Below, piece by piece: positions 8,686 to 56,087 of a stretch of 64,000 nucleotides of DNA (position 1 is the first letter of the stretch; the number at the start of each line of letters is the position of its first letter). The DNA is from Macrostomum lignano (taxonomy: Eukaryota). The DNA lies in assembly GCA_002269645.1 (NCBI GenBank), contig NIVC01000003.1, forward strand, positions 372,001 through 436,000, in the 5' to 3' direction. Position numbers and translations under genes: made by a program. A model generated the notes under the pieces. It was not told where the DNA came from. It was given only the letters and a program-made list of their open reading frames with translations, and did no database searches.

Positions 8686-11600
8686 TCAGGCGTTCTGCTG
8701 CAGCCGCTCGCCCAGGTGGCGAAGCTCCTCGGCCACCGGCGGCGGCAGGTCGCGGTTGAGCTGGCTGCTGAAGTAGGTCTCCAGCTCCTTGCACTCATTC
8801 AGCCAGAAGTCCACGGGCACGGAGAACAGCGCGTCGACGTTGACGGGGCTGTCAAGGCCTTCCAGGTTCAGCGCGTTCGGCTTAGGCAGGCGGCCGATGG
8901 GCGAGTCCACAGCGCAGTCCTCGTTGTCCACCCGGCGGCAGATCCAGTCCAGCACGCGGCAGTTCTCGCCAAAGCCGGGCCACATGAACTTGCCGTCCTC
9001 GCCTTTGCGGAACCAGTTCACGTGGAAGATCTTCGGCAGCTGGAGGCCGGGCTTCTCGTCGAAGCTCAGCCAGTGGTCGATGTAGTCGGCAAAGTTGTAG
9101 CCGAAGAACGGGCGCATGGCGAAGGGGTCGTGCATGATCACCTTGGTGTTGTGCTCAGCTGCCGCGGTGGCCTCCGAGCGCATCGCGGCACCAAGGAAGA
9201 CGCCGTGGCGCCAGTTGTTGGCCTCAAACACCAGCGGCACCCCGGCTGGCCGGCGGCCGCCGAAGATGATGGCGCTGATGGGAACGCCGGCCGGGCTCTC
9301 CCAGTCGGGGTCCATGGAGGGGCACTGCGAGGCCGGGGCGCAGAAGCGGGAGTTGGGGTGCGCGGCCAGGATGCGGTTGTACGGCGTCCACATCTCGCCC
9401 TTCCAGCTGGTGACGCCGACCGAGGTGTCCACCTGGGTAGCGGGACAGCGGCGGGGTGGGGCGTGAAAATGTAGATTCTAGAGTTGATGCGAGATTGCCT
9501 ACTGACAATTAATAGAGCATCGGGCCTGCGATTCAACTCTTATCGATGTTCTCAACTCCAGGTTTTTGGCAGATCTTTGCTGGTTTCTGAGGGAGGTTCG
9601 GGCAGGTCTTTGCTGGTTCTTGAGGGAGGTTCGGACAGGTCTTTGCTGGTTCTTGAGGGAGGTTCGGACAGGTCTTTGCTGGTTTCTGAGGGAGGTTCGG
9701 ACAGGTCTTTGCTGGTTCTTGAGGGAGGTTCGGACAGGTCTTTGCTGGTTCTTGAGGGAGGTTCGGACAGGTCTTTGCTGGTTCTTGAGGGAGGTTCGGG
9801 CAGATCTTTGCTGGTTCTTGAGGGAGGTTCGGGCAGGTCTTTACTGGTTCTTGAGGGAGGTTCGGGCAGGTCTTTGCTGGTTCTTGAGGGAGGTTCGGGC
9901 AGGTCTTTGCTGGTTCTTGAGGGAGGTTTGGGTAGGTCTTTGCTGGTTTCTGAGGGGGGTTCGGTAGCGGAATGGGCGACCCTCGCCTCCCCGCTGTGTC
10001 TACGGACCACCCTGCAGCTAAGTCAAGAGGGGGGTTCGGGCAGGTCTTTGTTGCTTTTTGAGGGACATTCGGGCAGGTCTTTGTTGCCTTTTGAGGGAGG
10101 TTCGGGCAGGTCTTTGTTGCTTTTTGAGGAAGATTCGGGCAGGTCTTTGCTGTTTAAAGGGAGCCTTTTGCGCACTGCTCTCCAAGGTACGCCAATCGAT
10201 TTCCAGGACCAGCAGGCAGCCGCCCGCTCACCTCCTTCTCGAGGCCCTCCCAGAAGACGCCGCCATCGTCAGTCTCGGCCACATTGGTGAAGATGGTGTT
10301 TCGCTGAATCGTCTTCATGGCGTTGGGATTCGTGTGGCTGCAGGTGCCGGGCGCCACGCCGAAGAACCCGGCCTCGGGGTTGATGGCCCGAAGGACGCCC
10401 TCGGAGTCGAATTTCATCCAGGCGATGTCGTCGCCAACGCACTCGACCTGGCGGGTGCGGGGAGCCGGGAGCAAACAATTTATAACATTAATATTTCATA
10501 ATCATTTATACTTCAAGATGAGCAAAGTGAGCTATAAATGTTTATAAATGCATAAATTGAGATATATTAGACAGTAATTTTATTATCTATATAATATATA
10601 GACAGTATTTTTATTATTGTTAGGATTCTTGAGACTTCAAGACTTCTTGATCAATTGTCAATTTTAGGCAATCTGTAAACATGGAGTCTGAAGACACAAT
10701 GCAACTTTGGTGTGTTAGCAGAAATGCTCAGCAGTATAAAGGGTAGGGTAGTAGAGGTGCTAGTATTTTTTTTGATTATTAGCTTTTTAACATGGCACTC
10801 TGGATTTCAATTTAGCTTCATAAATTTGGATCCAGAGATACCTAATGGCACCATGATGCTAATGCTCAAAAACCAAGGATTTTATTATATTATTAATTAA
10901 TATTTATATAGTGTTATTAAACTTTATAAACTTTTTATAGATCTATAAAAAAATAAACAAAAATAAATAACTTAAACATAATATAACTATAATATAGAAA
11001 AACATTATGTCAAATTATTAGACTAAGGATGGGATGTAAAAAGTAAGAATAAAAAATCTGTGGGTCTCCCATAGATGGCCTGCATATGGTCATGGGCGTG
11101 GGTGGCAACAATTGTTTGAGCATTTCTAGCAATAGAATAGTATATATATAGTATACCCAAAAATTAAACAGTATTTAAACAATATAAAATTTAACAAAAA
11201 CCAAAAGAACTAAATTTATACAGAAATAAACAAAGCTAAACAGACTTTCTAAATTATTGCATCTATAAATTTGAATTTAAAATCATACCTTATATCCTGG
11301 CAGTGTAGGCTGCATCATGGCCAAGTTGGTCTTTCCACAGGCAGATGGGAATGCAGCAGCAACATACTTCTTCTTGCCCTGTGGATTGGTGATGCCAAGG
11401 ATGAGCATGTGCTCAGCCAGCCAGCCTTCCCGCTTGGCCAAGATGGAGCCCAGGCGCAGGGCAAAGCACTTCTTGCCCAGCAGCGAGTTGCCACCATAGC
11501 CAGACCCGAAGCTGGCGATCTCGTTGCGATCGGGAATGTGGGAGATGAGGATCTTGGACGGGTTGCAGGGCCAGTTCTGCACCAGCGGCTTGCTGACACC

Positions 11601-12248
11601 TGAGAATGGCAGGCCGACCGAGTGCAGGCACTTGACAAAATTGTCGCCCTGAATAGCCCCAAGAGCGTCCTTGCCCATTCGGGTCATGATGCGCATGGAG
11701 GCCACCACATAGGGCGAATCAGTGACCTGGATGCCCACCTTGCTGATCGGGCCGCCCACTGGACCCATGGAGAATGGGATGATGTACATTGTTCGGCCCT
11801 CCATGCAGCCGGGGAATCGATCCCGCAGTGCATTCTCCAGCTCGGCAGGAGACAGCCAGTTGCCCAGCTGGCCTTTGACGCCCTCCTTGGGCACCGGGAC
11901 AGTTTCGCGCTTGTCGGAGGTGCTGATGACGGTCTTACTCTCGACGCGGGCAACATCGGCAGGGTCCGTGCGCACCAGCCAGCAGTTGTCCATCTTGCGC
12001 AGCGGTTTGGCAATGCCAGCGCGTCGCATGATTTCCAGAAAGCGTTTGTTCTCTTCCTCGGAGCCGTCGCACAAGTACACATCGTCCGGCTGGCAGATGT
12101 TGGCCTTCTCTTTAACGTAATTGCGAGCAATGGTGGGGAGGCTGCTCAGAGTTGTTGGTATGTCAGCTAAGCCGCGACATGGCGTTAGTTTGACTTGCAG
12201 GCTGGAGCTGAGGAGCCGGTAAATTCCAGGTCGAAAAATCCCAGACAT
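8686..12248 (-). CDS. PCK: Phosphoenolpyruvate carboxykinase (GTP), 640 aa, probable mitochondrial presequence; exons 12248-11289, 10447-10232, 9432-8686
   Basis: Motifs [72 protein letters not shown] and FHVNWFRK. Both introns are GT-AG in phase 0. The N-terminus is rich in Arg/Ser/Leu and lacks acidic residues. Confidence 0.98.
9566..10155. repeat. 33-bp tandem minisatellite in PEPCK intron 2 (GGCAGGTCTTTGCTGGTTCTTGAGGGAGGTTCG)
   Basis: About 12 pure copies at 9566-9965 plus degenerate copies at about 10030-10155. It generates the [11 protein letters not shown] ORFs. Confidence 0.96.
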
Positions 12249-36674: not shown

Positions 36675-39274
36675 TGTGGCTGCGGGTGTGAGTCCAGGTG
36701 AAGAAAAAAGATTTGCCCTATAAGTTTATTAATTACTTTCTTATCAAAAGGTGACAATATTTGTTTTAAATTCATAGACAACATAATTATTCAGCCAACC
36801 CAAGTCAATTAAGTAAGCTACGTATACTTAAGCTACGTAGTCTCGTATTTACTTTTAAAGATTGTCCATTGATAATCTTTGCTAAAACTCAACCTGGCAG
36901 TTTTAGACTGTACTAGCAATCTAGTGCTGCCCCCCTTCTGGACGACCAATAAGCAAGGAGCAAAAATAGTTCAAGGAAAAACAATTAAAAAACCACATTT
37001 TCTTAAACACCAATTCCTTCTTCACTTTTAAAAATCACCTCATTCATATAAAATTGTCACGGACAATGATATTTGTTAGGAATCTCTTTTTTTTTCTAAA
37101 ATTAACAAACACAACAAAATATAGCTTTCACAAAGATAACAGACATTCCCCCTAAATAGAAAATACTCCCAAGACAGCAAGCATCCCTCAAGAAAGCAAG
37201 CACCCCCCTTCAAAAGTAAGCAACCGCAGATTAGACTATATTGAAATTTTATAATAGACACTGATTGCAACAATCACTTACAAACTATATAATGTGATTT
37301 CTTTTTTTCGCATTTCTATGGTATATTAAACCATTAAATTAAAATTCAAGTGTTTTTGTTTACTACAATTATTAGCTAGAGGGCTCCCAATAGAAAACCC
37401 AATAGCTGCAGATAGCCATGGATTTAACCTAATGAGCTTATGCATGTAAAAAATGTGCTGTTTCTTTGATGGCTGCTCTGCAGCCACAGTGGATTTTTTC
37501 AGAGTGAGTGGCAGGGTGCCACTTGTGCTGGCCATAGACGGCTGCAGCTGTAGACATTCAGCAGATGACAGATTCTTTTTGGTAGCTCAAGACACATGTG
37601 CATAGGGGATGCACATGCCTATACAACTAAAAAAGTAGAAATAAAACACAAAAAAATTAATGTCTATTAAAATTTTTGAATCTTTTTATAGTTGCAACAG
37701 GTAGTAATTATATCAAATTTGCATACATTGCCTATTGGAGTAAGTTTCAAAAACTTGCACATATATAACACAGATGCAAAAAGTTGCCCAATGCATAACA
37801 CATGAGTCAAAAGAATGAAAAAGTGTGACATGATGTAGCACTAATAGAAATTTTGTTTAGAAGTACTTCTGATCAGGATTTGAAATAACAATTTATAAAA
37901 TTATTAAACATGGTAGAAAATGACAGATAAAGACCAATATGAAAATCTAGAAAATAAAGTAGGCCTCAACATTCTAAAACTTAATATACAAAGTCTCAAA
38001 CAATAACTAAATTACTCTTGCAGTGTTTTTTATATGTTCTATGCTATATGTGCTATAATGACTCTTAGAGAGAATTACTGAAATTTCAATGCTTTAGGGT
38101 TAGGGTTAGGCTAGGGTTAGAAAGTAAACAATTTTTTTAAGATTTCAAGGCTTATGGGGGCATTGCTAAGATGTCAAGGGGGGAGTTGATATGTTAAGCC
38201 AGTTAAGGCTTGTGGGGGGAATTTCTGACATGTCAAGGCTTACAAGGGACAGCTGGGGTAAAATGCAGAGATGCTACATGTAGTTTATTAAAACAACTTG
38301 TACTGCATTTTTTAGGCTCCCCAACGGGGGGCTCTAATTGCTAGTCACTACCCAAAAGTGGGTAAAGATTTAAAGAACCACACCACAGTGACTTCTTAGC
38401 CAAAGATATACACCTAGATATATTACCTAGATAATTTTGTGAAGATAAAATTAAGTTGACTTTGATGCTCTTTGTACTACTTGGTTTTGATTTTTTAATT
38501 TGATAGTTTTTCAATATTTTAGAAAGCTGTTAAGAGCTAGTGCCATCAATAGCATGTCTAAACAAGTTTATTGCCTTGGATGAAGATGAGGATGAGAATA
38601 TGCTTATTTCTAATGTTGACTAAGACCTTGACTAGGCTGAGAAAAACTGAACTAGCTAAAATGTACCAACCCAAGGCCAGCCAATTCAAGTTATTTTGTA
38701 AAAAGAAAATGAGCAATCAAATGACTTGTTCCATTCCAGAGTTTTGAACTCAGGCTTTATGCTTCACTATATTATGCAGCTATGTGTTTTTTATGAAGAA
38801 TCCAAATTTATACACTATTGCGAGCTGTGTTATGTTATCTCTGCATATATCAATTGCCTTGAATCCATGCATTTTTATAAGCCTCTGCATATTATTTAGC
38901 ATTAGAATTAGAATGTGAGTTTTTTATTTTATATTCTGATATAGTATAAGAACTACTGCTTCTTGCATTGCAATAGGCAACTTAGGAGTTTCTGGATAAT
39001 GTTAATTATTTCACAAAAGGGTTGCTAATGTGCAACATTAATAATTATAGTCATTATAGATAGGAAACAAATTTTGTTCTTGCAGTTGCAGATCCCAAAT
39101 TATTTTTATGCATAGGCGTAGGAATGAGGGAAGGGGCAGTGGGGCCAAGGCCCCCATGTTTTAAAATGGGAGGCCAATAATAGTATCTGGCCCCTCCACA
39201 TTTTAAATGTAAAATATAGACTTCTTGCTTATTTTTAGTTTTTTCTTCTTTGCATGAATGGTGACAAAACATAG

Positions 39275-40237: not shown

Positions 40238-43200
40238 AATAGAGGTGTGCACTCTATGTGTCCCCCCCTCTAAATCTATCACTGAACCTGGCCCTCTAGT
40301 TTTTGAAACATTCCTATACCTATTTTTTATGCCTATATCATTGACAATATATAGAGCAAAAATTGAAACACATATATGGCCTTTTTCTAAATAATTGTCA
40401 TAATTGAAACAATTTTTAGGGCAAATTTTTCGAAAGTTCAAAATTATTCAAACAAAAACATGTCTTTGTCAAATGTATAAATATACAAATGTATAATCTT
40501 AAAAATGTGCAAAGACAAATATATTTGCAACCCTATTGGATCATTGCATATAGTATAGGGCCTTTGCAACTACAACCCTATCTCAGAGACATGTAAGAGC
40601 TAGCCCCATAAAAAGAAAACTTTTAATAAATTAATATTCATAGGTCTCTAATTGTTATTAGATTAAATTTACATTGAAGCATTGTGCTCCATGGTATTAC
40701 TTTTGCCAAAATGTCTTTTTGCTGATGTGACCTACACCCAAGAAAACTATTATTAAGACATTTTTATTTTGCTTTTCTATTTGAATTTGGTTAGAAGTCA
40801 TATTTGGATACTTGGATTAGGGCCTAGGCCTAATATTCAAACCTTTTTTTGGATATCCTAGCTAAAATTAACTAGTTCTTCATGGTTCAGTTAAATATTT
40901 ACTACTTTTAATATTTTGGCCTACTATTTTTGCAAAGTTTATATTATAAACAAGCCTAAAATATAGTTTGCCATTTTTTGTTTCTGTCTTGGTACATTCT
41001 TTGTATGCGATATAAATCCTTTGGCGTATATTGGGCAGAAGGGCAGATGCAGTAAAATTTCAAACTCAAGCAGCCAGGTAACTCAATTATCTTAGTACAC
41101 CACCGAAAAATTGTTGACGTTGAGGAAATACAACGACAAATGAGTATTGTATGGAAGGTTTGCAGTAATCTTGCCTTAGTGAATACAAAATTAACTAAAT
41201 TGATGAAATGACAAAAAAATGAGCATTCTTGTAGAAAGCAAAAAGCAAACAGCCTCCCAAAATTACAAAACTCATCATTGCAAGACTGACTGGTATGCGT
41301 TTTGTATTTTTTCCAGGAAACGAAAAGCCAATAGGATACAATTTTTTTTTCATTTTTTGGCAATATATATTTACATCAGATTGTGTTTTTATTACAATTT
41401 AATTGACAGACGCTGTTTTTGTTTAAATGTTAAGCTGTACAGAACTGTACAGTTTGTTATACTTTTTGAACAAAAAATTTTCGAGGCCGCATGATACGAG
41501 CAATTATTTGCCATGCTCCAGCCTCCAAGATCATTTCAAAAAAGCGGACGCTGAGCTGATATACTTATATAAAACTAAATACAAGTGTACGATTTTTATC
41601 TGTTCATAATTCTGGCAAATTCGTCATCTTGCCTTGGCACTTTGTTACGCACCAATGTAATGCAAGCAATAGTGCATAACATCTTTTTACTTCACTTAAG
41701 TTTACCTTCTATATTTTCATATGCCCATATATCCTTTTATGCTAGTTGGTAGTACTAGAATATATATTTCGAATTTAGTATTTTGGTAAGACACATTTTA
41801 GCTAAGGAATTGGACGATTTCTTAGTTTGTTTTTCATGTGCACGCAATTGGACCACTTGCACGATTTTTAAGTGTTGCGTCCTTTAAGTCTTGTAGTCCT
41901 TGGTGCATGGTAGGTTGGTTTATTCAATATCGACTAATTTTATAACCCCCTCCCCCTTTACTTTGCTGCAAATAGAAATCGCGTAGAGAATTTTTTCAAA
42001 CTTTCCAGCTTTTTTCGACTTCCGAATTGCATTAGTCTTCCTTTACAAGTGTCTAAGCGTAAGTAATACAGCTAGAGCAGGAAAGCTCGACGTACTACTA
42101 GGCTAGGCGTGCAGCACTAGAAAGAGGATTAAAGTTTAATTCGTATATTCGTATAATCGGCTAAGAAAGAAGCCAGGTAGATTCTAGGTAGACAGGTAGA
42201 GAGAGATGAGATTAAAACTAATTATATTTTACTATATGCGTACATGTACATGCAAATTTACAGATTTTCATATGCAGTATAGGGATGAATTAAATGGGAT
42301 TAAACTGAAGCTGAAAACATTTTTTGGAATGCAACAACGTGAACAGCAACGCAGCTGTAATAGACTAATAAAACAGTATATTTAATTTTTACTTAATTGT
42401 TGTGAACATAATTAACAGTATCCGTGTCGTGATTCTCATTAGACTTAACCTAGCTAATGGCCACAACACTGAATAAGGAGGCGAGATTGCTAGGTAGATA
42501 CGAGTACTTAAACGAGAGTAGGGTGCTGATTTGTAAAATTTAAGTAGGTCCAGAAAAAGTAATGCTAAATACTAAAATAATGCAGCAATTAAAACAGCCA
42601 AATAATTCTGCAACTAATTATTTTTGCTATAATGTGCGGAATAAGAGATAGAAAGAAAAAACTAAAAAAGTTTGACTAGGTAATTATTTTTATAACAAAT
42701 TGCAAGACTTGCTTATAGAATGAACAGAAGCAACAACACTGCAGTAACTATCTGCAGTCGTTGCTAAAAATATCGGGTAGGGAATATCAATAGAGCTACT
42801 GAGCTGTAGGACTGCGAGACTATAGCTGATCGAATGACCATTAAAAATGATTGACACTCAACCATATATTCAAATCTAAATAACTAAATTTAGCTCATCA
42901 AACTATCATTCTATAGTTATCTATCATTCAATCATTCATAAAGCGCCTTATTGCACAGAGTTACAAATTCAACAAAAGACTCAAACTTTTAAAAGTCAGA
43001 ACTGATAAAGGGCAAGCAATGACTTAGTGATAACCAGAGTTCCCAAGTTCGGTTCTGGGGTAAAATGGCCTCGATTGTTTGGGGTCCACACATGGACAGT
43101 GCCAACTGGAAGGCCCAGAGTGTGCAGGAATACAAGCTTTGACATTGGCAATCAGGCCAGCAAAGCTGTACACCTGTGCGAGCGGCGCCTGCTCAGCGGA

Positions 43201-43333
43201 ATGGGCTGACTGCGGGGATCCTAAACATCTTCGCAATACTATCAACGCCTCGGTAATAAACTGGGTAATAAACTAATAAACGGTAATAAACTTAGTAAAC
43301 CCATGCAACGTCTCGTTGCCAATGGCGACGCAG

Positions 43334-46300
43334 TCACATCTTGCCGCGCGAGAAATTCTCGTGCAGACGGGGCTGCACATCGAACAGCAGAGTGAGCAGC
43401 CGGCGGATCGCCTGCTCCTTGTTCTGGCGCACGCTGCCGCTCAGCTCGCTCAGGCGCTGCCGGGTCTCCTCCTGCACCAGCTTCTCCGAGTCGGTGCGCG
43501 AGCCCAGGGTGCGCGCCTCGTGCGCTTTGAACTCGCGCTCCCGCTCCAGCTTGAAGGCCTCGATCTCGGCGGCAGCCTCCTGCTTGGCCTGCTTCAGGCG
43601 GCGCTGCTTGCCTGCGGGCGACAGATCGAGTCTTCTTTTAGAAGAAGAGCGATGAGTTTGGAACTTATTCAACTTAGTTGCAAATTTGTAGCAATAGCAA
43701 ATGCTAAAAGCTGAAGGCTTCAAAGTTACGGCTGCCATAAACGCATGATTTGCAAATAAAAAAGCAAAACTTGAAATTGAAACAAATTACACAAATAAAT
43801 TTTCATGGGCTGACGCCACTGTCTAACCTTGAGGTTAAATCTGAGCCTGAGGTTGGACTGAAATTCAAGCCAGTCAGAGAAAGCTCCACTCTGATTGCAC
43901 TTCCCACTGTGCCTACTGACAACAGTAGGGTATCAAGCGAATTACTGGCATGAAAGTTCTATTCTACAAGTATATGTAGGTATATGTACGAGTACAAAGT
44001 AAATGTAGGAAGTCGAAGTCGGATTAATTTAAAGAAAAATATGCGATTTATTTTGAGTAAAAGTTACTTAGTGAAATACCGAACTGCGGGTTAGAATATT
44101 GATCGATAGGTTAATAAATTAGTGCTAAGCAGGTTCGTGACACAAAACCCTAGGCTCGCAAGAATACTCGTAGAAATTGGTTTGTTGGATCAGCGATCTG
44201 TGAATAACCAAAGAATTCAAACTGCAACAAAATTTGTTTTATAGGAATCAGAGCAGTCAGCGCAGCTCAGTTAGTCAACAGGTATCACAGCTCAGGCTTT
44301 GCTGCCGCTTGGAACAGCTGTTGAACGAAGCTGACATTGAGACCACAGTGGGCAACTTCTTGTTTGTATAGAACCCAGCTGACACTTGTGTATAACCCAG
44401 CTGACACTTGTATATAAATTGACACCCCAGCTGACACTATTGACACCCAGCTGACACTATTGACACCCAGCTGACACTTTCTTGACACCCCAGCTGACAC
44501 TTTCTTGACACCCCAGCTGACAGTATTGACACCCAGCTGACACTATTGGACACCCAGCTGACACCATTGACACCCAGCTGACACAGGAGATCTCTATACA
44601 CTACGCACTGCATGCAGACTGCTGGACCCCGCAGCAAGCCTCAGTCAGCAGCGCCGGCCGGAGACCCAGTCGCCGCCCTTGAAGCTGCCGTAGCCGCAGT
44701 ACCGATGAGCGCGGCCCGACACCATCTCGGTGAGCACAGTCGAGTCCAACTTGATCCGGTAGCCGAACCACGAGCCGAACGTGGACTCGTCAGTCCAGCT
44801 GACCTCCAGCTTGGCAGGCGCCGAGGCGGCGAGGCTCCACCAGCCAGTGCAGCCGAAGACGCCGCGCTGCCGGGAGCCGGGACTCAGCCTGCGCTCATCG
44901 ACAGCGAGTTTAACTGGGCCGCACTGCTTGCCGCCACAGCTCAGCTGCACCTTCAGGCCGCCGGTTCGGCCCGACGGCGACTTGGAGGACAGGCGCAGGG
45001 TCACGTGATAGTGCACCACCGAGTACGGGGCGCTGGGACCCGTCAGCAGGTAGTAGCGATGGGGCAGCCGGGAGCCGGTAAACCGGGCCTTGTACTTTTT
45101 CGCGTCCAGGCCCATGACCGGGCAGCCGCCGCTGGGACAGTGGGAGCCGCAGTCGCCAGCCATGAACTTGTCGTAGTTGTCGCAGGGGAAAGCCGAGAAC
45201 GCTTTCGAATTCGCGGTCTTCAGGGTGTCAATGTACAGCTGCGGGGCCCGGCTGTGATCGCAGGCGCCCAGCGAGGAGCAGCCGGGCTGGTGGCGGCCGC
45301 CGTTGACAAAAAAATCCACGTGACCCACTGGAGACTGGATGCCGAAGCCGCCCTGCAGTGTCGGATGGGCAACCGATTCGTCGAGTTTTAGGCTGAAGAA
45401 TCTGAGACTGGGAGCTGAAACCGCCCCATCTGAACTACAAGTTTGCAAACTGCGACATCATAAAAATCACAAGACGGCTGCGGCCATCCTGGCGCAACGC
45501 CTTCAGCGACATCGTCTCACAATCAGCGGTGAGGCAATTCTGCCCATTCTGCTGACTCCTGAGCCAATACTGTACTGTGCGCAGGCACGCGCTCACGCAG
45601 GGTGTACAGCGGCCTTGACTTTTTAATCGGCAGACATGTACACTTTCTATGGCTTAGGGGTTGGCCCTCAGGCCTCACGGATGTGAATCGCACGACAAGC
45701 CGCGCAAGCCGCAAATCCCAAATGAATGTGTTTGCGCACGGAATTGAGCCCGAAATCGTGGCGTGAGAGTCGAACCCGTTTACTGCTGAGCTGCTCTGCC
45801 CGGAAAACTGGCACAGACAAACGGAACCAAGGGACAAATCTGGAGTGGCGATCCCGCCAAGCACTCACGTTGAGCAGTGGCAGGCCGACCCGCCACAGCG
45901 CGCCGTCCGTGTGAATGGCGTCGACAAACTTGGCGTCGGTGGGATCCAGGCGCACCACCGGGTCCGTGCCCTCGAAGTACGGCCCAGCCGGGTCCAGGCC
46001 GGTGATGCGGCCCAGCGGGGTGCCCCTCTCCCGCAGGCGGCGGCCAACGTAGCCGGCGATGTGGCCACCCAGGCTGAAGCCGATGACGTGGACATTGTCC
46101 AGGTCAACGCCGAAGCGGCTGTGCAGCCAGCGAAGCATCCGGGCAACAACCGCGCCAACCACCCGAGTGTTGGACGTGGCCTGGTTGTACAGCGTGACGG
46201 ATCCGCCGGCCCAGCCCACCTGAGAGGCAGGAAGAGCGGCGCTGTAGAGCTTCCACTGATTGAATACCATTACATATTTGCCTTGAAATTCATTGTCTTC

Positions 46301-46948
46301 ACCACGCGTTAAACCTCTCGATGGTGTAAACAGACATCTGAATCTTGTAACTAGAGGCATGGATTATGCAACTGACAGCAGCGAATCGCACCTGAATCAA
46401 ATTGCAGTCCACCCGCTTCAGCATAGCCTGCCTGATGCGGTTCATCCAGCCCATGACGCCCTTGCCCAGGAAGCCGTGGATGACCAGCTTGGTCGGCCGC
46501 CTGTTGCTGAAGCGGGAGCGCAGCACGGATTTGGCGTTTTTGTAGTGCAGCTCGGCCGGGCTGGCCGGATTCCGACGGGTGAACAGCAGGAACTTCGTGC
46601 CGATCACTTCTGGCGACTGCGGCACGACAACCACGGGGCGGTGCAGCAGGTTGAAGTACTTTCCCTTGATGCTGAAGCAGCCCAGATCTCCGTAGCAGAC
46701 GCTGGTCTTGACCAGGAACCTTTCGTCTTCATCGATGTCCTCATCGCCGTAGTCCGGAATGTCAGGCTCGACGTACTCGTCCAGGTCGATGCTTAGGGTC
46801 GACAGCGGCGCGAACGTCAACAGCAGCGTCGACAGAAGCAGCAAAGGAAGGCGGCACTTCATCTTGAGCGTTATGCTGGCGTCTCACTGGGTTTCTTCTA
46901 TTCATTAGATCATTATTTATAATGCGAGCTGGCGCAACTTAGCACCAA

Positions 46949-46985
<37 letters not shown>

Positions 46986-49900
46986 TCAAAAACACCGCGG
47001 AGTCCTAGACAGAGAATTTGGAGCGGCGACTCAGCTCTGAGCAACAAACTTAGGCCATAAAAACGCATGAAAGATTGAGCAGAAAATTGTCCAAACCCTT
47101 CGCACAAAACTTCCTAGATTGAATTGACTGACCAAAGCATCTGATTTCGTTTAACAAAAGAAGTGTGGAGCGTGGAAAAGTGAAAAATTTACAAAGTGCA
47201 TTTTCCCCGTACGGCTTCAAACCACCGGTAGCTAAGTGTTCGTTCTACTAAACAGTACGCATGGTTACGAAAATAGTAGTAAATACTAGAAATCTGCAGC
47301 ATTGACCCCTTAGCAACTCCCCCATGAGCCTTGACATCTCAGCAACTCCCCCATGAGCCTTGACATCTCAGCAACTCCCCCCATGAGCCTTGACATCTCA
47401 GCAACTCCCCCATGAGCCTTGACATCTCAGCAACTCCCCCATGAGCCTTGACAACTCAGCAACTCCCCCCATGAGCCTTGACATCTCAGCAACTCCCCCA
47501 TGAGCCTTGACATCTCAGCAACTCCCCCATGAGCCTTGACATCTCAGCAACTCCCCCATGAGCCTTGACATCTCAGCAACTCCCCCCATGAGTCTTGACA
47601 TCTCAGCGATTCCCTCATGAGCCTTGACATCTCAGCAACTCCCCCCATGAGCCTTGACATCTCAGCAACTCCCCTATGAGCCTTGACATCTCAGCAACTC
47701 CCCCATGAGTCTTGACATCTCAGCGATTCCCTCATGAGCCTTGACATCTCAGCAACTCCCCCCATGAGCCTTGACATCTCAGCAACTCCCCCATGAGCCT
47801 TGACATCTCAGCAACTCCCCCATGAGCCTTGACATCTCAGCAACTCCCCCCCATGAGTCTTGACATCTCAGCGATTCCCTCATGAGCCTTGACATCTCAG
47901 TAATTCTTCCCGTGAGCCTTGAAATCTTGCAGCAAATTCCCACATAAACCATTGACATCTCAGAATGACAACTCATTTTTAGTATATGAACAGCAGTATA
48001 CAAACTCTATAGTGGGTGGACTTTGTGGAAGTGTGCAGGGCGGCATGTTTTGTCAGGGGGAGGCAAAAGTTGCAAAACCAAGATACTGACCTCCTCGACC
48101 TCACCTGAACGGATTTCCATAGCAGTCAATAAGCGATAATCTAAATGTAGGGGGGGGGGGGGGGCAGCTGCCCCCTGTTCCTCGGTGCCTGTTGCAGTCC
48201 AGATCTCTAGCTTTAGGCGTCCCTGCCAATAAAATGCAGCTACGCGCGCACGTTTTGTTGTTGCGCCAAAACAGCCCCCATTGAACTCGATGCGCTTCGG
48301 TGAACACCTGCTCTGGTGAACAGCTTCTTCAAGCATGTTGCTTTAGCTTATTATCATATTAGCAGCCTCAGACCCCGGGCCTGTCTGCCTATTGTCCTGG
48401 CGAGACGGTTTTTATGACCCAAAAGCTGCTTCAAACTTGGAGAGGGGGTCGCACGAGCGCATTGACGTTGCTGTTTACCACTATGGCCGCCCCGTCTTCA
48501 GGACTATTTTTGCCGTGCAGTGTTTTTGTTTAAATGTCGCCTTTGATAGGGTAAATAGATTAAAAAGCTCGTAGATTCAAAACATTAAAAATGTATGCCG
48601 AAAAAACATCTCATAACGTGCAACATAATACTTGTAGTAGGATACTACCAATTATGCAATTAAGCAAGTTAAAAAGCAAATTTGCAGCATTTTGCCAATA
48701 TCCATGATTTTGATGCACATAATGTTCAATTAACAAGGCATTTAGTAGCACTGCAAAAGTAACAAAGATTTTTTATTTTATATTTGATTTGATAAACTTG
48801 AGTGAGAAAAGGCTGTTGTCAATTTTTTTAAGTTTTAGACACTATGAAATATGTTAAATCTTTTTTTCAAAGGAAAAATACTATATTATTATTTTCTATT
48901 TATAGGCTAGCCACCCAAATTCTAATTGATGACTTGCTATATGTACCTCCCTGTGCCTCCAAACTTACAAAATTTCCCATTTTAGGTTTTACTACTTTGT
49001 GCTCTACTTAATGATAGGCATTATTTGTTTTTTATCATTATCTAAATAATCTAATGCAACAAATACATTGTTATGGTGATAGTCTTCGAAAATTAATTAA
49101 TAGTGTTATAAATTATAGCTTTCTTTACATATAGGTAAAACAGGTCTACTACTAATTTTGCATACAAGGTCCCAGACAGTCTAATATGGTATATGGCATT
49201 CATCAAATATTTTAAGGTTTTTTGGCATGCTCTAAGTAGTAGAATTATGTGTAACTTTTTTGTTGGCATGCCACAACTATCAGAGCAATGCAGAGTGCCA
49301 AAAAGGTCTTTTATTGTTGCAATTCCAAAAATGTTTTTTTATTGTTGCAACCATGAAATTTGCCCTATTGGTCTATTATCACACACTAAGTGGATTTGAT
49401 CCAACCCTCTGGCATAAACTGTGTAGGGCAATAAAAATTCTCACATGCATATTATATACTCTGGACTATGGGCCTTAATTACTTTTATCACAGATAGAAC
49501 ATCAAGGCCTATTTAACTAGTCTTTAATAAATAAAATAGGAGCAAATTTAATTTGTAAATGCTTGCATTAAATTATAAATAGTCAGTTTAACTGGCACAT
49601 GTCTAAGGTGGCCATATACTAAAGTGGCTACAATATAGGCATTGCTTTAAATCAGCTTATGCAAAGAGAAATAACTTTGTTTTAACTTCTTTAAAATACA
49701 ATTGGCTAATCTAGCTTCTAGCTAGAGGAGTCAAAAGACCATTTTTAATGTCTAACTTTGACTATAGGCCTAATGAATAATTATAGGCCTAATTGTAAAT
49801 AATATAGTATTGGTTACTCAAAAGCTAGGCCTATCCAAAACTAGATAGTTTGGCAAATAAGATATGGACTCAGAGATTGAGATAAGAGGAATTGATAAGA

Positions 49901-50649
49901 GAGAGAGAGAGAGCTTCTGTTTCTATACCTTATCCTCCTCTCAGCCTTCCCTCTCACTTCCCTCCCCTTCCCTCTTCCCTCAACATTGGTCTGTGCCCAC
50001 CTTGGTCTGTCACTGTTTAACTAGGCATGTAGCTAGAAATTTTCTTTGAGGCCACTAGAAATAATCTTTAGGATGAGAGAAGAAATATACTTAAAAAGCA
50101 GCCATAAAAATTAGATGTTTTTTTTTGGGGGGGGGGGGTAAATTCCCATTCCCCCTTCCTACACCTCTGAGTTTAAACTTTTGGAACTTTTTATACTAAT
50201 TGAGATAGGCAACTTATTTCATAGAATAAAATGATATATGCATTAACTTTATAACTTTTTCTAAAAATGAAAAACTTGAAACATAACAAAATAAAAACTA
50301 ATAAATTATCTAAATGGTAGGCCTAGGCCCAAGCGGCCTAGGTTTAAAACAAATGACTTACTTATCAATTTTTATATAATTTATAAATATAATTTTGTGT
50401 TAAGCTATAATGTACACATCAATACTACACTGGTATTGCTGGAACCCGTCAGCAAAAGTTATGCATTAGAAATAAATCTCTTCAGTCAAAGGATTTTCAT
50501 GTATGCAATCCCAACCCAACGTCCTATTGTTTAGTATTTACTTGTAAGTTGTAAGTTTCAGATTTACCTTTTCGAGCTTCCTCGATTTTTTCACGTGCTT
50601 TCTTCTCTGCTTGGAGAAGCTGTTGGATTCCACCAGTTTGAGTGTTCAT
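43334..50649 (-). CDS. ATP6V1G: V-type proton ATPase subunit G, 119 aa; exons 50649-50568 and 43611-43334, separated by an intron of about 6.96 kb
   Basis: Exon 1 is MNTQTGGIQQLLQAEKKAREKIEEARK-G|gtaaat (82 nt, phase 1). Exon 2 is cag|GC-KQRRLKQAKQEAAAEIE...LFDVQPRLHENF. The join is in frame and gives the canonical subunit G sequence. Exon 1 is too short to appear in the ORF track. Confidence 0.93.
44375..44585. repeat. 19-21-bp minisatellite (TTGACACCCAGCTGACACT)
   Basis: About 10 copies immediately 3' of the lipase stop codon. Confidence 0.92.
44645..46862 (-). CDS. Secreted pancreatic-lipase-family enzyme with a C-terminal PLAT-like domain, about 509 aa; exons 46862-46392, 46219-45869, 45352-44645; nested in the V-ATPase G intron
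   Basis: Signal peptide, CYGDLGCFS, TKLVIHGF, HVIGFSLGGHIAG (Ser), ITGLDPAGPYF (Asp), DAKFVDAIHTD, GHVDFFVNGGRHQPGC and CDHSRA (His). Both introns are GT-AG in phase 0. Confidence 0.96.
47305..47930. repeat. 28-30-bp minisatellite (AGCAACTCCCCCATGAGCCTTGACATCTC) with a variable C-run, about 21 copies
   Basis: Directly visible, in the V-ATPase G intron upstream of the lipase. Confidence 0.95.
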
Positions 50650-53600
50650 TTTGTATTGTTTAATTTCACGAATGCTGTTGTTGTTATTTAATACTTAAAT
50701 ATTTATTTAGGCAGTAGGAAGAAGAATAAAAAATAGTAATTTATCTGTCTGCTATTATTGGGTAAATCTCAAATTGAAATATACGTAAGTTATAAACAAA
50801 TTTTTTCTTTCAGCATGAATTTAATTGTTAAACCAGAAGTATTTGTACATAAATTTAACTTTTATTTATAAAAAACTGATTGAAAAATGTGTCTTTAAAC
50901 TTTTAGCCAGAGCTTATGCTTTTATCGTGGCGATAGCGACCGAAAACGTATTTTTCTGACTTGTACTTTAAGTACGTTTTTTTGTTTCATAACGCTCTTT
51001 TGTGTACGTGTACTATTTTTGTCTATGGGACAATGACTGAAAATATAGGGGAAAACCTTTATCTGTGAGCTTGTGGATATTTTACGGCTGTGTTTTCAAT
51101 ATTTATGAACTTATTTAGCCCTGTCTTAATTGCATGACACTTGTCTACTGTTGAAAAATTCCTGTAAGGTGTAGGTTTTCTGATAAACAACGCCAAACAT
51201 TTTGATCTTTAGTGATTCATTCTTTCAGAGACATTTTAAATATTGTTATTTTGTTTTATCTGCGACTGTCAATGCATTGTTACTTACTTATGCCTATTGA
51301 TGTTACATTTTGACTTTTTTCATGAGCACAAAATTTCCTGTAAGGTGTAAGTTTACTCAGCTCATAAGCATGTAAATGTTCCCAAAACTTGTTATTATGT
51401 AGAAAAATACTAAACAAAGAGTAGTTTTTTATTGCATGTTCTTGTGATTTTACTAAAGAAGTATAGACCTTATTAAGTTCATTATATGGGTTTTTACCAT
51501 TTATAGCCAACTAACATACTTAAGTAAGCAGTTTGTTTATTTTTGTATGAAAATCTTTGATGAATTCGCTTGTAATGATATTCAATTTTGATCTTATGTG
51601 TATATTTTGAGCTCTAATGTTTGGTAATCCATATAAATATTCTAATTTGTTTTTGCCAATGTATTTAATATATTCCTCTAATGTTATCATATTTGAATGC
51701 CTATTTGGGCTAGCAAAAGACAATAGGTATGGCAGGAACAGGAACCCTTAGAAACAGTTTGCATGGTTAGGAGAAAGCAAAAAGAATCCTGGTATTGCAT
51801 ACTTTTATTGTATTTAATGACACCTTAGAAAGCCTTTTTACTCATAATTAGGAAGCACAATCTATCTACTTCTATTTGTATTTATATCTCAATATCTGTG
51901 TGTAGCAGTATATGTTTACCTTGCAATTTGAATGCCATATCTATTATTTCTATTTAGTCATTTTCAATTGTACTCTGCTATCTTGGTATTCATTTACAAA
52001 AATACAAAGTGAGAGTCTATCTGTCTATTTGTAAATTTTGGCAATTTTCAATGTAGACATTCCTAAAATTACTACAGTTATTTTCTTTAAATTGATACCA
52101 GATAACATTAAGATGATAATACCTCATTCTTATATGGTTTCTATTTTCTACAATACACAAATTTACTTCAAAATTCATTTCTTGTCTGGAATAAAAGTGG
52201 ATATTGCATGATAATAGAATATATTTATATGTATCTCTATAGTACAGTGCAAGAAGGGAGTGTTGGCCATGATGGCATAGCAGTCATGAGGGTAGAAAGA
52301 ATTGCTGGGCTGGGCCAATGCCAAATGCCACACATGCACATTGTTTCACATGTGCACTGTGTAGTTACAGTGTTGGGCATAAAAACTAACACATCTATGT
52401 AAGAGTTTGAAATCCTATATACTGTATTTGTACTGTCAGTTGCATCTTATCCTGGCCTGTACATCTGTTGCTTTCTCTTAGCATACTGTATTACCTTTCT
52501 CTCAGCATATATATATGTTTTAGTTTCCAGTTTAACATTTGCCATTTGCCATTTACATTTTTCTTAGTTTTCAGTGCCATATCTGCTTTATATAGTATTT
52601 TTCAGTCTGTAAGTTTTCTGTTTTTTTTTCTTTTTGCCAGTATCTTTTTGGCTTTTATTTACTGTTGTACATTTTCCCAGTGCGAGTAACTGTACGCTTT
52701 TAATTTCATTGCATTTTTATGGTCTGCACTTCTTTATATAAGTCCAGTGCAGTTCAAGTATCTGTTTCAGTCTGTTTTTTCTTGCACATTTTAAAGTAGA
52801 AATGGGAAATATACATGCAATTTTTTGTTTTGCTTTAATTTACAAACAAACATCTACATTCTACAGACGATATATTTGATCAGTGATGGAAACCTTAGTC
52901 AAAACTTCAAAAGTAAAATGTATAAGTATATTTTTTAACTTCTAGCTTTTTAGCAGTATGAGAGAACAGCAGCTTCGAGTTCTTTGTCAAGAAATTAAGG
53001 GAAAGTATTGGTGTTATTTTTGTGGTATGGCTTGCAATTTGATAGTTGCAAAACTTGATTCAGTTGAATTAAAGAGACAAACGTGTAATTTAAAGAAAAT
53101 TCAATACATTTGCTTAATTAAAATATGTTCAAGTTGAATACTAGATCCATGATCCATCGGTGTCAGTCTGAATATTACAGAATTTGTAGGTTTCGCCATA
53201 TTAAATTTTAGTAAAGATAAATAACCCAATTGGCATCGTTTCATTGCCATCAATAATAAACTCCGTTCGTTATCAGTCCGTCAACGGGATATGTTGTCGA
53301 TATATATATAAAAAATGGTTTAGGTACCGTATATTCCGTTTATATTAAATCAGGCAGATTCTTAGCACGTTAAATTAAGTAACTATAAACAGCCTCAATT
53401 TATAACAAAATGTTTCTTAAAAACAAAGAATATTTTGTGTATACTACAAACCAAAAGAAATTTAACTCTAAAAAACAAAAACTACAATTTTGTATGTTAA
53501 ATAAACAAAAAGTTTATCTTCGGTATTAATCGTTGTCAGAATACCCTTCGAAAAAACAAACAGCATTCTTTCTTGAAATTCAGGCCTACTTGTGGTTTTA

Positions 53601-56087
53601 AGTAGAAAAATTATTATATTATTGTTTAATCTTCAGAGGTAAAGCATTATTTTGCATGCCACAGAACTTTTATTTTTTGTCAATTTTTTTACTTCTGTGT
53701 TTGAGATTTACCCTATTATATAATCATAAACATTTAAGTCAAAATTATAAAGCGAAGCAAATCTAAACGTTTAAACAAAAGTTCACCACTTTAATTGTAA
53801 TTAATTAGCTTGACCTACTTTAACTGAATAAAACTTTCTAAGGCTTTTAAAAAAGAATGCAGTAAGCTTAGTGGCGTGTATTCTTTTAAGTAATTTTTCG
53901 TTAATAAATTACCGGGCTTATTAAATTAAACTTGTCTCTTGCAAAAACTGCTTCGAACGTGTTTCTCTGGGCTCGACCCTGCCGGGGTTAAGTGATACCT
54001 ACATTTACATGTACCATTTATGTACATACGCTAGAGACTGCATGAATTACGAGTAGCAGCCGAGCCAGGATAAAATTAATTTAATTTAATTAGCCCTTGA
54101 ATAACACTTGCAAGATTCGCGTCGTTCTACCTAAGTAGTCCGTGACTTTCATTTGAGACTGCAATCCATGCAATGCAGCCATAAATTTCAGTTTTCTTGA
54201 CGCGCAGTTCCTATAAGTTCCTGTTACAGGTTTGTACTGAAACACTGCACTCGGAGAAGTGAAAGACTGTTGACTAAGCCAAGAGTACATTACAAAGAAT
54301 GAACTGTAAACTTTTGAAGTGGGGAGGTGCTGCGGGCTGGCTTTTGCCCGAGCAGTTCCTAGAGTACGAGAACAGATAAATGAAGCACATGCACGTCGCA
54401 CATACATGTACAGTGTAGAAGGGGATAGCCAGCTTCCACCAGCATCAATTAATCCGATCGCAATTCGGCGTAACACATGCATGCAAACTAAATGGCCGGG
54501 CGGCCAAAAATTACGTGATACATTCCATAGATTTTAAGTGCATGCCTAAATTTCAACAAGTTTAAAGTTAACTGTATTAAGGAACAACGGAAAAACTTTC
54601 ATGTGACTAACTACACAATTCTGTGCATTAATTTAACAAGTATAGTGCTTGATCAGCTTACTTACATCATGTACTTGCATGGCCTGTGGTGGCCCATGGA
54701 AGTTATACTGTAATATCAATGAGGATCCCTAGCACCACTTTTGTGTATGACCTTGAAATAAAGTTTCTCAGGGATTATTGTTTTTAGACCTAAAATCAAT
54801 AAATTAGCTGCCCGGAGTCCCCATGCCCCACAAAGTGAATATGGCATGTCGCTGCCCTTCCTTAGAGTGCACATCCATGCAGGGACCACTCAATACACTA
54901 CTGAATACTGTATTGAGTATCCCTGCATCCATGATAAGCGTTGGGAGCAGAAACTGGTCACTTTCCCTCAATATTTCAGCTTGGATCCCTGCCAAAAATC
55001 ATTTTCGGCACGAGAAACAATCCTATGAAAATTTTGGATACTTACAGTATAGTGCTATTAATTGTTTTTTTTTCTGAAAGCATTGAACAAATGTCAGTCA
55101 ATAAAAGCAATAAGATCACAGTCAAGATAGGCACGCGGTCTGTTAAGAGTCTCGATCGGGATTGCGCTATTCGTGGCAGACATGGATTCAAAATTTATTT
55201 GTGATTGAATCACTGCTTTACTGCATAGCTACTGTCGGTAGAACATGAGACTCTTCAATTGCAGAAGAAGCCACAATTGAAATTGTGCCCAGCTTTCTGC
55301 TCAGTCTAATTTCAAGTTTAATAGCTTTATGATGGCTTAGCTGAATAGACATAAAGCTGATCACTGATCACTCGGATGCGCACTTATTCTATTCCGATAA
55401 TAGACTTGCTTTCACTAAGCAATCAAAAAGCTTGTCTTCAGGATTAACTCACGCAATTAAGCATTAATATTAGTGTTGCGTCCCGTAAAAGTACGGCACT
55501 GCGGCAGCTCGGCAGCGTACGAAGCCACCAATTGTACATATAAAGAAAAAGACGGCGGATTCATGCACAATCAAAATTGTTAATAATAGTTGCATGACTA
55601 ATGCAAGTAACATTAATTAACGCCTTTGCTCCATACAGATGAGGGCACTAAACAAAGCCGAATCCGCTAGCCGATCGTCAAGTTCGTCAAGTTGCAGTAA
55701 CCATGGCAACAATAAATCTAAGGGATGCAGCTCAGCCGGAAAGCTAAACCGGGCATGTAAAGTGTAATGTGCTTTTTGGATTAAATTATTTAGCGAGTCA
55801 AATAGAGTCCAAGAGCGGGGCAGAAGCAATAGAGAGGATTATATTTAACTTAAGCCTGTCAAATCTATGGGAGTGAAATAGAAAGCCGGATTTAAGAACG
55901 CAAGGAGCTACAGATAGGTAAGACAAAAACAAAGACAACAAACAAGAGAGGATACAACTATTTCTATCAGCATAGGAGCGCGAATCATTGAAGAGGGCAT
56001 TTAGTGCGGGAGGCGGAAATCGGTGCCGTTAATCGCGAATCGGGCCAATCAGGGGATTCGGTGGCTTGGGCTCGCAAAATGCAGGGG

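Follow-up and report, generated by a model that had tools for sequence, protein, structure and literature searches.

A complete lipase gene nested on the same strand within the sole coding intron of a V-ATPase subunit G gene in Macrostomum lignano

The locus described here was compared with published catalogues of nested genes, which cover Drosophila (Lee and Chang 2013, PMC3814207; Assis 2016, PMC5174743) as well as mouse and human (PMC11694760). An earlier note on this DNA had stated that nested genes are mostly antisense to their hosts. This holds for Drosophila, where 71% of the pairs lie on opposite strands (PMC3814207), but not for mouse and human, where the orientations are 'broadly similar' (PMC11694760); same-strand pairs account for ~29% in the fly and for roughly half in the mammals. 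Among the same-strand guests of Drosophila, 72.5% are intronless, and the hosts of the intron-containing ones are less often essential (PMC3814207; PMC5174743). A second related arrangement is the operon resolved by spliced-leader (SL) trans-splicing, described in Macrostomum lignano (PMC5730564, PMC8629364) and in C. elegans, in which one primary transcript covers two same-strand genes.

In M. lignano, a complete three-exon lipase gene lies within the only coding intron of a gene for V-ATPase subunit G, in the same orientation as its host. The earlier note had proposed this nesting, and it is confirmed. The window, that is, the whole 64-kb stretch analysed, corresponds to positions 372,001-436,000 of the forward strand of contig NIVC01000003.1 (assembly GCA_002269645.1). 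Both genes are on its minus strand, the lipase (46862-44645) is wholly contained in the host intron (50567-43612), and they have no exon in common. The features of the locus, in window coordinates, are as follows.

50700..50709, minus strand: TAAATAAATA, a TATA-like candidate core promoter of the host, conserved between the three copies of the locus; 51-60 nt upstream of the start codon of subunit G
50568..50649, minus strand: coding exon 1 of subunit G (Mlig012681.g3), 82 nt, encoding MNTQTGGIQQLLQAEKKAREKIEEARK plus the first base of a Gly codon; donor AAG/GTAAAT
43612..50567, minus strand: sole coding intron of subunit G, 6,956 nt, phase 1, GT-AG
47298..47963, no strand assigned: 29-bp minisatellite with 22.6 copies, which ends ~435 nt before the lipase ATG
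46914..46921, minus strand: TATAAATA, candidate TATA box for the lipase, whose ATG lies 52-59 nt downstream
46392..46862, minus strand: lipase exon 1, 471 nt from the ATG; donor CAG/GTGCGA
45869..46219, minus strand: lipase exon 2, 351 nt; acceptor CTTCCTGCCTCTCAG/G, donor AAC/GTGAGT; carries the GFSLGGH nucleophile elbow and the Asp of GLDPAG
44645..45352, minus strand: lipase exon 3, 708 nt with the TGA stop; contains the catalytic His (ACDHSRA), the mini-lid CSSLGAC and the C-terminal domain
44364..44584, no strand assigned: 20-22-bp tandem repeat inside the presumed 3' UTR of the lipase, starting ~60 nt past the stop
44047..44052, minus strand: AATAAA, candidate 3'-end signal of the lipase, ~590 nt past the stop
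43334..43611, minus strand: coding exon 2 of subunit G, 278 nt including the TGA stop; acceptor CCCGCAG/G

The pair resembles the catalogued same-strand nested genes in that the guest sits within one host intron, that intron is unusually long, and no exons overlap. As in those cases, the host is a conserved gene of the housekeeping type, and the guest of M. lignano is probably a tissue-restricted secreted enzyme. It differs from most Drosophila cases in that the guest itself has two introns with good splice sites, and it is this intron-containing, same-strand guest that makes the nesting less common. The host differs as well, having only two coding exons, so that a single splice must span the whole guest. 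The nesting is already largely present in the public annotation and is an ordinary, if less common, case of a well-known phenomenon. We found no mention of Mlig012681 or Mlig034080 in the literature searched or in the supplements of the genome paper.

The two subunit G exons had been joined in phase 1 by the earlier note to give a protein of 119 aa; the coordinates are exact, and the product is identical to GenBank PAA94716.1 (Mlig012681.g3). Transcript assemblies, both from RNA-seq and de novo, underlie the Mlig_3_7 annotation (StringTie, TACO, TBONE and TransDecoder), which is not an ab initio prediction (PMC5730564). The host splice across the lipase is thus represented, as the protein of the joined exons, in a transcript-derived annotation of a locus whose copies are nearly identical. 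Pfam V-ATPase_G (PF03179) matches residues 4-106 of the 119 (E=5.6e-31, 107.7 bits, cut-off 28.6). Exon 1 encodes the conserved N-terminal segment GIQQLLQAEK...ARK, and the intron is placed as in orthologues. In a six-frame tblastn search of the 64-kb window (word size 2), the protein found only its two exons, the next exon-1-like match having E=0.79; there is no nearer first exon in the window. Translation of exon 2 from an ATG donated by a spliced leader was ruled out, since a stop follows after 6 codons in that frame.

The same 82-nt first exon and phase-1 intron occur in the paralogue Mlig009743 and in snake ATP6V1G2, which indicates that the lipase occupies an enlarged, ancient intron. 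In Protobothrops ATP6V1G2 (locus L007; 53% protein identity), the first coding exon likewise encodes the conserved N-terminus and the intron interrupts the identical codon, but the snake gene has a second coding intron, and its first intron is ~180 nt long and has no annotated guest gene. At 6,956 nt, the intron in the window is shorter than its counterparts in the two further copies of the locus (7,936 and 7,688 nt), and that of the paralogue measures 1,982 nt. Introns of M. lignano average 1,114 nt (PMC10468722), and that of subunit G is about six times as long. Its 5' third is AT-rich, and its 3' two-thirds, which contain the lipase, are GC-rich. GC3 rises from 0.33 in exon 1 to 0.92 in exon 2; in Mlig009743, which has its intron at the same site, the values are 0.41 and 0.62. 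No structured RNAs or tRNAs were detected in the intron by searches of the whole window with Rfam at gathering thresholds and with ARAGORN, and no dispersed repeats were found there in a search of the window, other than the 29-bp minisatellite, which has a weak relative at 38140-38249.

The guest encodes a protein of 509 aa, and its frame, stop and splice sites are complete, with two GT-AG introns of 172 and 516 nt. The N-terminus, judged by eye, is signal-peptide-like. The protein matches the lipase profile PF00151 over positions 2-336 of 336 (E=7.6e-91, 305.3 bits, cut-off 27) and human pancreatic lipase 1LPA with E=4.4e-81. The Ser/Asp/His triad is intact, GFSLGGH, GLDPAG and ACDHSRA aligning with GHSLGAH, GLDPAE and ACNHLRS of 1LPA. 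Only five residues separate the two lid cysteines (CSSLGAC), in place of a full-size lid loop, and no PLAT domain (PF01477) was detected in the C-terminal part at E<=0.001. The protein is a member of the pancreatic lipase family, but the short lid and the lack of a PLAT match set it apart from the classical pancreatic triglyceride lipases. A short lid is linked to phospholipase or galactolipase activity. Comparable are mini-lid members of the family such as guinea-pig PLRP2 (1GPL), one of the matches to the protein; these have the PF00151 fold, the Ser-Asp-His triad and a very short lid; the M. lignano protein differs from the solved structures in its low identity (~40%) and in having no Pfam PLAT match in its C-terminal domain. 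An origin as a retrogene or a recent duplicate was rejected, given the two introns and the fact that the nearest other lipases of M. lignano are only 38-45% identical. The exact protein of the window is absent from a collection of 15 billion sequences.

Two further copies of the locus, L002 and L003, lie on separate contigs and show the same nesting, with both genes annotated and the lipase on the host strand. The annotated protein pairs are PAA59910.1 with PAA59909.1 and PAA87381.1 with PAA87382.1, and the counterparts of the window lipase are Mlig034080.g1 and Mlig002264.g1. The three loci are collinear over ~27 kb, which rules out a misassembly across 44-50 kb, and all splice sites are kept. 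Between the window and its most diverged copy, exons are 98.7-100% identical and non-coding DNA 94.7-97%; exon 1 of subunit G is 100% identical in all three copies, and its flanking intron 94.7%. One site at which the copies can be told apart is Thr62/Ile62 in subunit G. The copy number of the 29-bp minisatellite varies between copies, and the 20-22-bp tandem repeat is ~960 and ~470 nt longer in the other two. In the subunit G paralogues, only the exons align (74-76% nucleotide identity), and an attempt to delimit a recent lipase insertion with the paralogue's intron failed for this reason; the origin of the nesting can be neither dated nor oriented from it.

How the lipase is expressed is the next point to consider. 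The earlier note had argued that the guest needs either an internal promoter or SL trans-splicing from the host transcript, which is logical, and the sequence favours the first option. The candidate TATA box TATAAATA occurs just once in a scan of the 238 nt that precede the lipase ATG (47100-46863); it is part of a conserved block, and its sequence does not vary between the three copies. No SL-acceptor motif (YTNCAG) was found within 300 nt upstream of the ATG of the lipase or of subunit G. The motif is present at only 9,551 of 21,754 known SL sites (PMC8629364), that is, at under half of them, so its absence does not exclude trans-splicing. At the other end of the gene, no canonical poly(A) hexamer other than the AATAAA lies in the stretch from the lipase stop to host exon 2, and this one is conserved in all three copies, in a block that is ~99% identical. 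Separate lipase models exist in two copies of the locus, with none for the copy in the window. That of L003 is 5'-partial and begins 9-11 nt upstream of the ATG, so that no upstream exon is attached to it. The transcriptional-unit names of lipase and host differ, a weak indication that separate transcripts were seen by the assemblers. Judged from the conserved TATAAATA and the absence of an SL-acceptor motif, an independent promoter appears to be the most likely mode of lipase expression.

We consider it likely that this is a genuine nested pair, in which the lipase has its own promoter and poly(A) signal and the host splices its first exon straight to its second. What is observed is the anatomy, the conservation and the agreement with the transcript-derived annotation; we infer the use of the promoter and of the poly(A) signal and the avoidance of mis-splicing. 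In this proposal, the host is one of three near-identical subunit G gene copies, whose ancient phase-1 intron would have grown to ~7 kb. Transcription of the lipase would most likely be independent and start at a TATA-type promoter a short distance upstream of the ATG, the transcript ending at the gene's own poly(A) signal, ~590 nt past the stop. During host transcription, RNA polymerase would read through the whole lipase gene, and the 82-nt exon 1 would then be joined directly to exon 2, the lipase being removed as intron.

Which copies are expressed is uncertain, because they are near-identical, and it has to be asked whether the nest is intact while the window lipase is silent or under relaxed constraint, the other two copies supplying the enzyme. 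The lipase is annotated in L002 and L003 and not in the window contig. The window protein has five private amino-acid changes in exon 3 (N322, K359, S381, C413 and T479), by which two cysteine positions are swapped, and 6 non-synonymous and 3 synonymous changes separate the window copy from L002; with only 6 synonymous and 7 non-synonymous differences, the lipase comparison cannot support a firm test of selection. Against this, the frame, the catalytic triad and all splice sites are intact in the window, and the stretch that starts at host exon 1, takes in the entire promoter region of the lipase and reaches lipase intron 2 is ~99.9-100% identical to that of the annotated L002. Transcripts are assigned to their best-matching copies, so an absent model can be a mapping artefact, and the downstream galactosyltransferase gene is likewise annotated in the other two contigs and not in this one. 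A silent window copy seems unlikely to us.

It is somewhat less likely again that one pre-mRNA gives two mRNAs, with a promoterless lipase released by SL trans-splicing at an AG near its ATG and by internal polyadenylation. The host intron would then be an outron, and an operon-like unit would be embedded in it. AG dinucleotides are available at -1, -14, -21 and -25 relative to the ATG, and the 5'-partial L003 model starts near the AG at -14. The locus resembles the SL operon systems in that one primary transcript spans two same-strand genes, in an organism with the machinery that resolves such transcripts. However, operon genes stand in succession, typically ~100 bp apart after repeat removal, and not one inside the intron of another, and at this locus the missing YTNCAG, the conserved TATAAATA at a plausible core-promoter distance and the differing transcriptional-unit names all argue the other way. 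Cleavage at the lipase poly(A) site would, moreover, end the transcript before host exon 2, so that each pre-mRNA could yield only one of the two mRNAs. A version that accepts this choice, with the lipase mRNA carved from the host pre-mRNA by SL trans-splicing and internal polyadenylation, either/or per transcript, and the paralogue covering V-ATPase needs in lipase-making cells, is slightly more doubtful still; if it were true, a single promoter would feed two unrelated genes, one within the intron of the other. Finally, an artefact of the gene model, with AT-rich exon 1 unrelated to GC-rich exon 2 or with 44-50 kb misassembled, might be suspected from the leap in GC3, the sixfold intron length and the wrong older UniProt models of the locus, but is hardly credible given three independent collinear contigs, an exon 1 that is perfectly conserved and without a rival in 64 kb, the same exon contrast and intron site in the paralogue and likewise in the snake orthologue, the early stop in exon 2 read from an SL-donated ATG, and an annotated protein equal to the join.

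To return to the nested pair with an independently transcribed guest, the host must splice past the lipase. The earlier note had the host pre-mRNA skipping three good exons and a 3'-end signal. The poly(A) signal stands, but the exons are fewer in effect: the lipase begins with its exon 1 and ends with its exon 3, so that the only acceptors open to host exon 1 are those of lipase exons 2 and 3, and the host has to avoid these two and the one poly(A) signal instead of three cassette exons. A splice from host exon 1 to either of these lipase exons is out of frame and leads to premature stops, and such mis-spliced products would be non-functional and probably degraded. The redundancy provided by three copies and a second paralogue may lower the cost of nesting.

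The pair does not reveal a new kind of system. It has value for annotation, given that older ab initio models fused both genes and that the lipase of the window contig is unannotated; the UniProt model A0A1I8GCF6, in which the lipase is fused to subunit G exon 2, is clearly wrong. Beyond this, it offers a clean, checkable example of a two-exon gene of the housekeeping type that has to splice past an entire same-strand gene with introns of its own. Genomic data from Drosophila suggest that selection acts against such a configuration, owing to mis-splicing; nevertheless, all three copies of the locus have retained the nesting, in a flatworm that is polyploid and uses SL trans-splicing. M. lignano is amenable to transgenesis, and 5'-end, SL and poly(A) read tracks are publicly available for it, so the pair could be used as a small model in which to study transcriptional interference and the choice of splice sites.

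The gene for V-ATPase subunit G (Mlig012681.g3) has two coding exons on the minus strand, and its single coding intron contains a three-exon lipase gene in the same orientation. The features of the nested pair and its surroundings are as follows.

50649-50568, minus strand: subunit G coding exon 1 (82 nt, open, ATG start, donor AAG/GTAAAT)
43611-43334, minus strand: subunit G coding exon 2 (acceptor CCCGCAG/, TGA stop)
46862-46392, minus strand: lipase exon 1
46219-45869, minus strand: lipase exon 2
45352-44645, minus strand: lipase exon 3
46921-46914, minus strand: TATAAATA, candidate TATA box of the lipase, 52-59 nt upstream of its ATG
44052-44047, minus strand: AATAAA, candidate lipase poly(A) signal, in a block ~99% identical across copies
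47298-47963: 29-bp minisatellite, ~435 nt upstream of the lipase ATG
44364-44584: 20-bp tandem repeat in the presumed lipase 3' UTR, downstream of the coding region
~56088 to at least 60649, minus strand: eIF4G-like MIF4G/MA3 gene, upstream of subunit G on the same strand
11283-12248, minus strand: PEPCK exon (PF17297/PF00821)
2558-3700, minus strand: protein kinase exon (PF00069)

The two host exons join in phase 1 to encode a 119-aa protein, which matches the Pfam V-ATPase_G profile nearly end to end (E=5.6e-31) and is identical to GenBank PAA94716.1 (BOX15_Mlig012681g3, Macrostomum lignano) by exact-sequence look-up. The minus strand of 43000-51200 agrees in every respect with the description in the earlier note. 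A sensitive tblastn search of the whole window with subunit G found these two exons only, and no likeness to exon 1 elsewhere, including 43614-50567 (best other match E=0.79), which disposes of a closer first exon. The M. lignano annotation rests on RNA-seq and on transcripts assembled de novo; the tools were StringTie, TACO, the TBONE boundary pipeline and TransDecoder, and transcripts with at least 95% identity have a common name prefix (PMC5730564). The join is therefore a transcript-derived model rather than an ab initio guess, and the evidence is common to the near-identical copies of the gene. Two older UniProt models of the locus are wrong: A0A1I8GCF6 joins exon 3 of the lipase to exon 2 of subunit G at cryptic sites inside both exons and looks like an ab initio artefact, and A0A1I8IAF5 keeps lipase intron sequence.

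The guest has introns of 172 and 516 nt, both GT-AG, and its 509-aa product covers the whole PF00151 profile (E=7.6e-91). In the alignment with human pancreatic lipase 1LPA (E=4.4e-81) all three catalytic residues, Ser, Asp and His, are in place, and the N-terminus of the guest resembles a signal peptide by eye. The lid (45230-45250) is shrunk to five residues between the two lid cysteines (CSSLGAC), and Pfam detects no PLAT domain in the protein; from its sequence, the guest is therefore classified as a pancreatic-lipase-family enzyme of the mini-lid type. Such members of the family tend to favour phospholipids or galactolipids. With its two introns the lipase is no retrocopy, and a recent duplicate is rejected because the nearest other M. 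lignano lipases are only 38-45% identical. On the window contig, NIVC01000003.1 of assembly GCA_002269645.1, the annotation of the locus shows the host only, the lipase copy having no GenBank entry, and its exact sequence is absent from the protein collection searched. Exon 3 of this copy (44645-45352) has five private residues (N322, K359, S381, C413 and T479); an exchange of two cysteine positions is among them, as the other copies have C381/S413.

Two further contigs, NIVC01002213.1 (locus L002) and NIVC01000236.1 (L003), encode a sister subunit G protein with a single residue changed. In both, the gene is annotated over ~8 kb with a lipase CDS inside it on the same strand: PAA59910.1 (Mlig034080.g1) and PAA87381.1 (Mlig002264.g1, flagged partial), respectively. 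Locus L001 is the window read in reverse complement, its position x being window position 60650-x. Over ~27 kb the three loci are collinear and share their neighbours, an eIF4G-like gene upstream and a galactosyltransferase downstream, so a misassembly is excluded.

In the three-way alignment, the window copy and L003 are 100% identical in host exon 1, 98.2% in host exon 2 and 98.7-99.7% in the lipase exons; in non-coding intron sequence identity falls to 94.7-97%, with many indels. All splice sites are retained between copies. The lipases of this pair differ by 6 synonymous and 7 non-synonymous changes, small counts that are compatible with purifying selection. Over ~5.3 kb, host exon 1 through lipase intron 2, the window copy is ~99.9-100% identical to L002; beyond that, starting with lipase exon 3, its divergence from both L002 and L003 is 1.3-3%. 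This mosaic points to recombination or gene conversion with a breakpoint within the lipase, at ~45352 (the intron 2/exon 3 boundary). The two minisatellites flanking the lipase differ strongly in length among the three copies, and an array at 38140-38249 is weakly similar to the 29-bp minisatellite (72-75% identity).

The host intron, at 6,956 nt, is about six times longer than the M. lignano mean of 1,114 nt (PMC10468722). A second subunit G gene, Mlig009743, lies on three contigs and is 81% identical to the host; its exon 1 has the same length of 82 nt, and its phase-1 intron measures 1,982 nt, with no guest gene annotated inside. The first coding exon of ATP6V1G2 in the snake Protobothrops is also 82 nt long and ends in phase 1 after a Lys codon matching that of the host. 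The phase-1 intron is therefore ancient, and in the Mlig012681 lineage it has become enlarged and occupied. Between the two M. lignano genes only the exons can be aligned; the lipase may have been gained in the host intron or lost from that of the paralogue. The L003 copy alone has ~840 bp of additional DNA (L003 10825-11665) within the AT-rich 5' portion of the host intron.

GC3 jumps from 0.33 in host exon 1 to 0.92 in exon 2 (0.86 in the lipase), tracking the local DNA, which is 30-37% GC around exon 1 and 53-57% around exon 2 and the lipase. The jump was set aside as evidence against the gene model, given that the paralogue shifts in the same direction, if more mildly (0.41 to 0.62), and that exon 1 is perfectly conserved; we take it to reflect the local base composition.

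About 110 nt upstream of the subunit G ATG, at 50760-53713, the window copy alone carries a 2,954-bp AT-rich element (30% GC) with 14-bp terminal inverted repeats (GGGTAAATCTCAAA) and a 4-bp target duplication, AATA; L002 has the empty site. Its longest ORFs do not exceed 76 aa, which makes a non-autonomous DNA transposon probable, and the element leaves a TATA-like TAAATAAATA intact.

In a scan of 238 nt upstream of the lipase ATG the candidate TATA box TATAAATA occurs once, and it is identical in all three copies. The 5'-partial L003 lipase model starts 9-11 nt upstream of the ATG and there is an in-frame stop at -21; the transcript as assembled thus begins near the ATG and has no upstream exon. 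Between the lipase stop and host exon 2, the AATAAA at 44052-44047 is the sole canonical poly(A) hexamer. Spliced-leader (SL) trans-splicing would be the other route to a guest mRNA. For M. lignano both the SL and the acceptor motif used with it, YTNCAG, have been published, and the motif marks under half of known SL sites (PMC8629364). It is missing within 300 nt upstream of either the lipase or the subunit G ATG, and no SL gene lies in the window; given the motif's frequency at known sites, its absence makes trans-splicing only less probable. The differing transcriptional-unit names of host and guest weakly favour separate transcripts. Taken together, the guest probably has an independent promoter.

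The observation of the earlier note is confirmed, and its structural reading as same-strand nesting is supported by the transcript-derived match to PAA94716.1 and by the annotation in L002 and L003. We consider it likely that the lipase works as a self-contained unit inside the host intron, having a promoter and a terminator of its own, and that host transcription would pass through it and host splicing span it. Either lipase acceptor, the one at 46219 with its strong pyrimidine tract or the one at 45352, could potentially be used by host exon 1; both chimeras are out of frame, with a stop after 65-68 codons, and would yield no functional product and probably be degraded. The conflict may be eased by expression of host and guest in different cell types, by kinetic preference for the authentic splice-site pair, or by redundancy among three copies and a second paralogue.

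In Drosophila, nesting involves ~10% of genes; opposite-strand pairs make up 71.3% of the total, and 72.5% of same-strand guests have no introns. Where a same-strand guest does contain introns, its host is less often essential, a pattern that has been put down to selection against mis-splicing (PMC3814207; PMC5174743). Nested orientations in mouse and human are 'broadly similar' (PMC11694760). The literature searched contained no mention of the gene identifiers of the M. lignano pair. In the light of these surveys, the pair belongs to the less common sub-class of a known class, and is a new example of a known arrangement that was for the most part already annotated.
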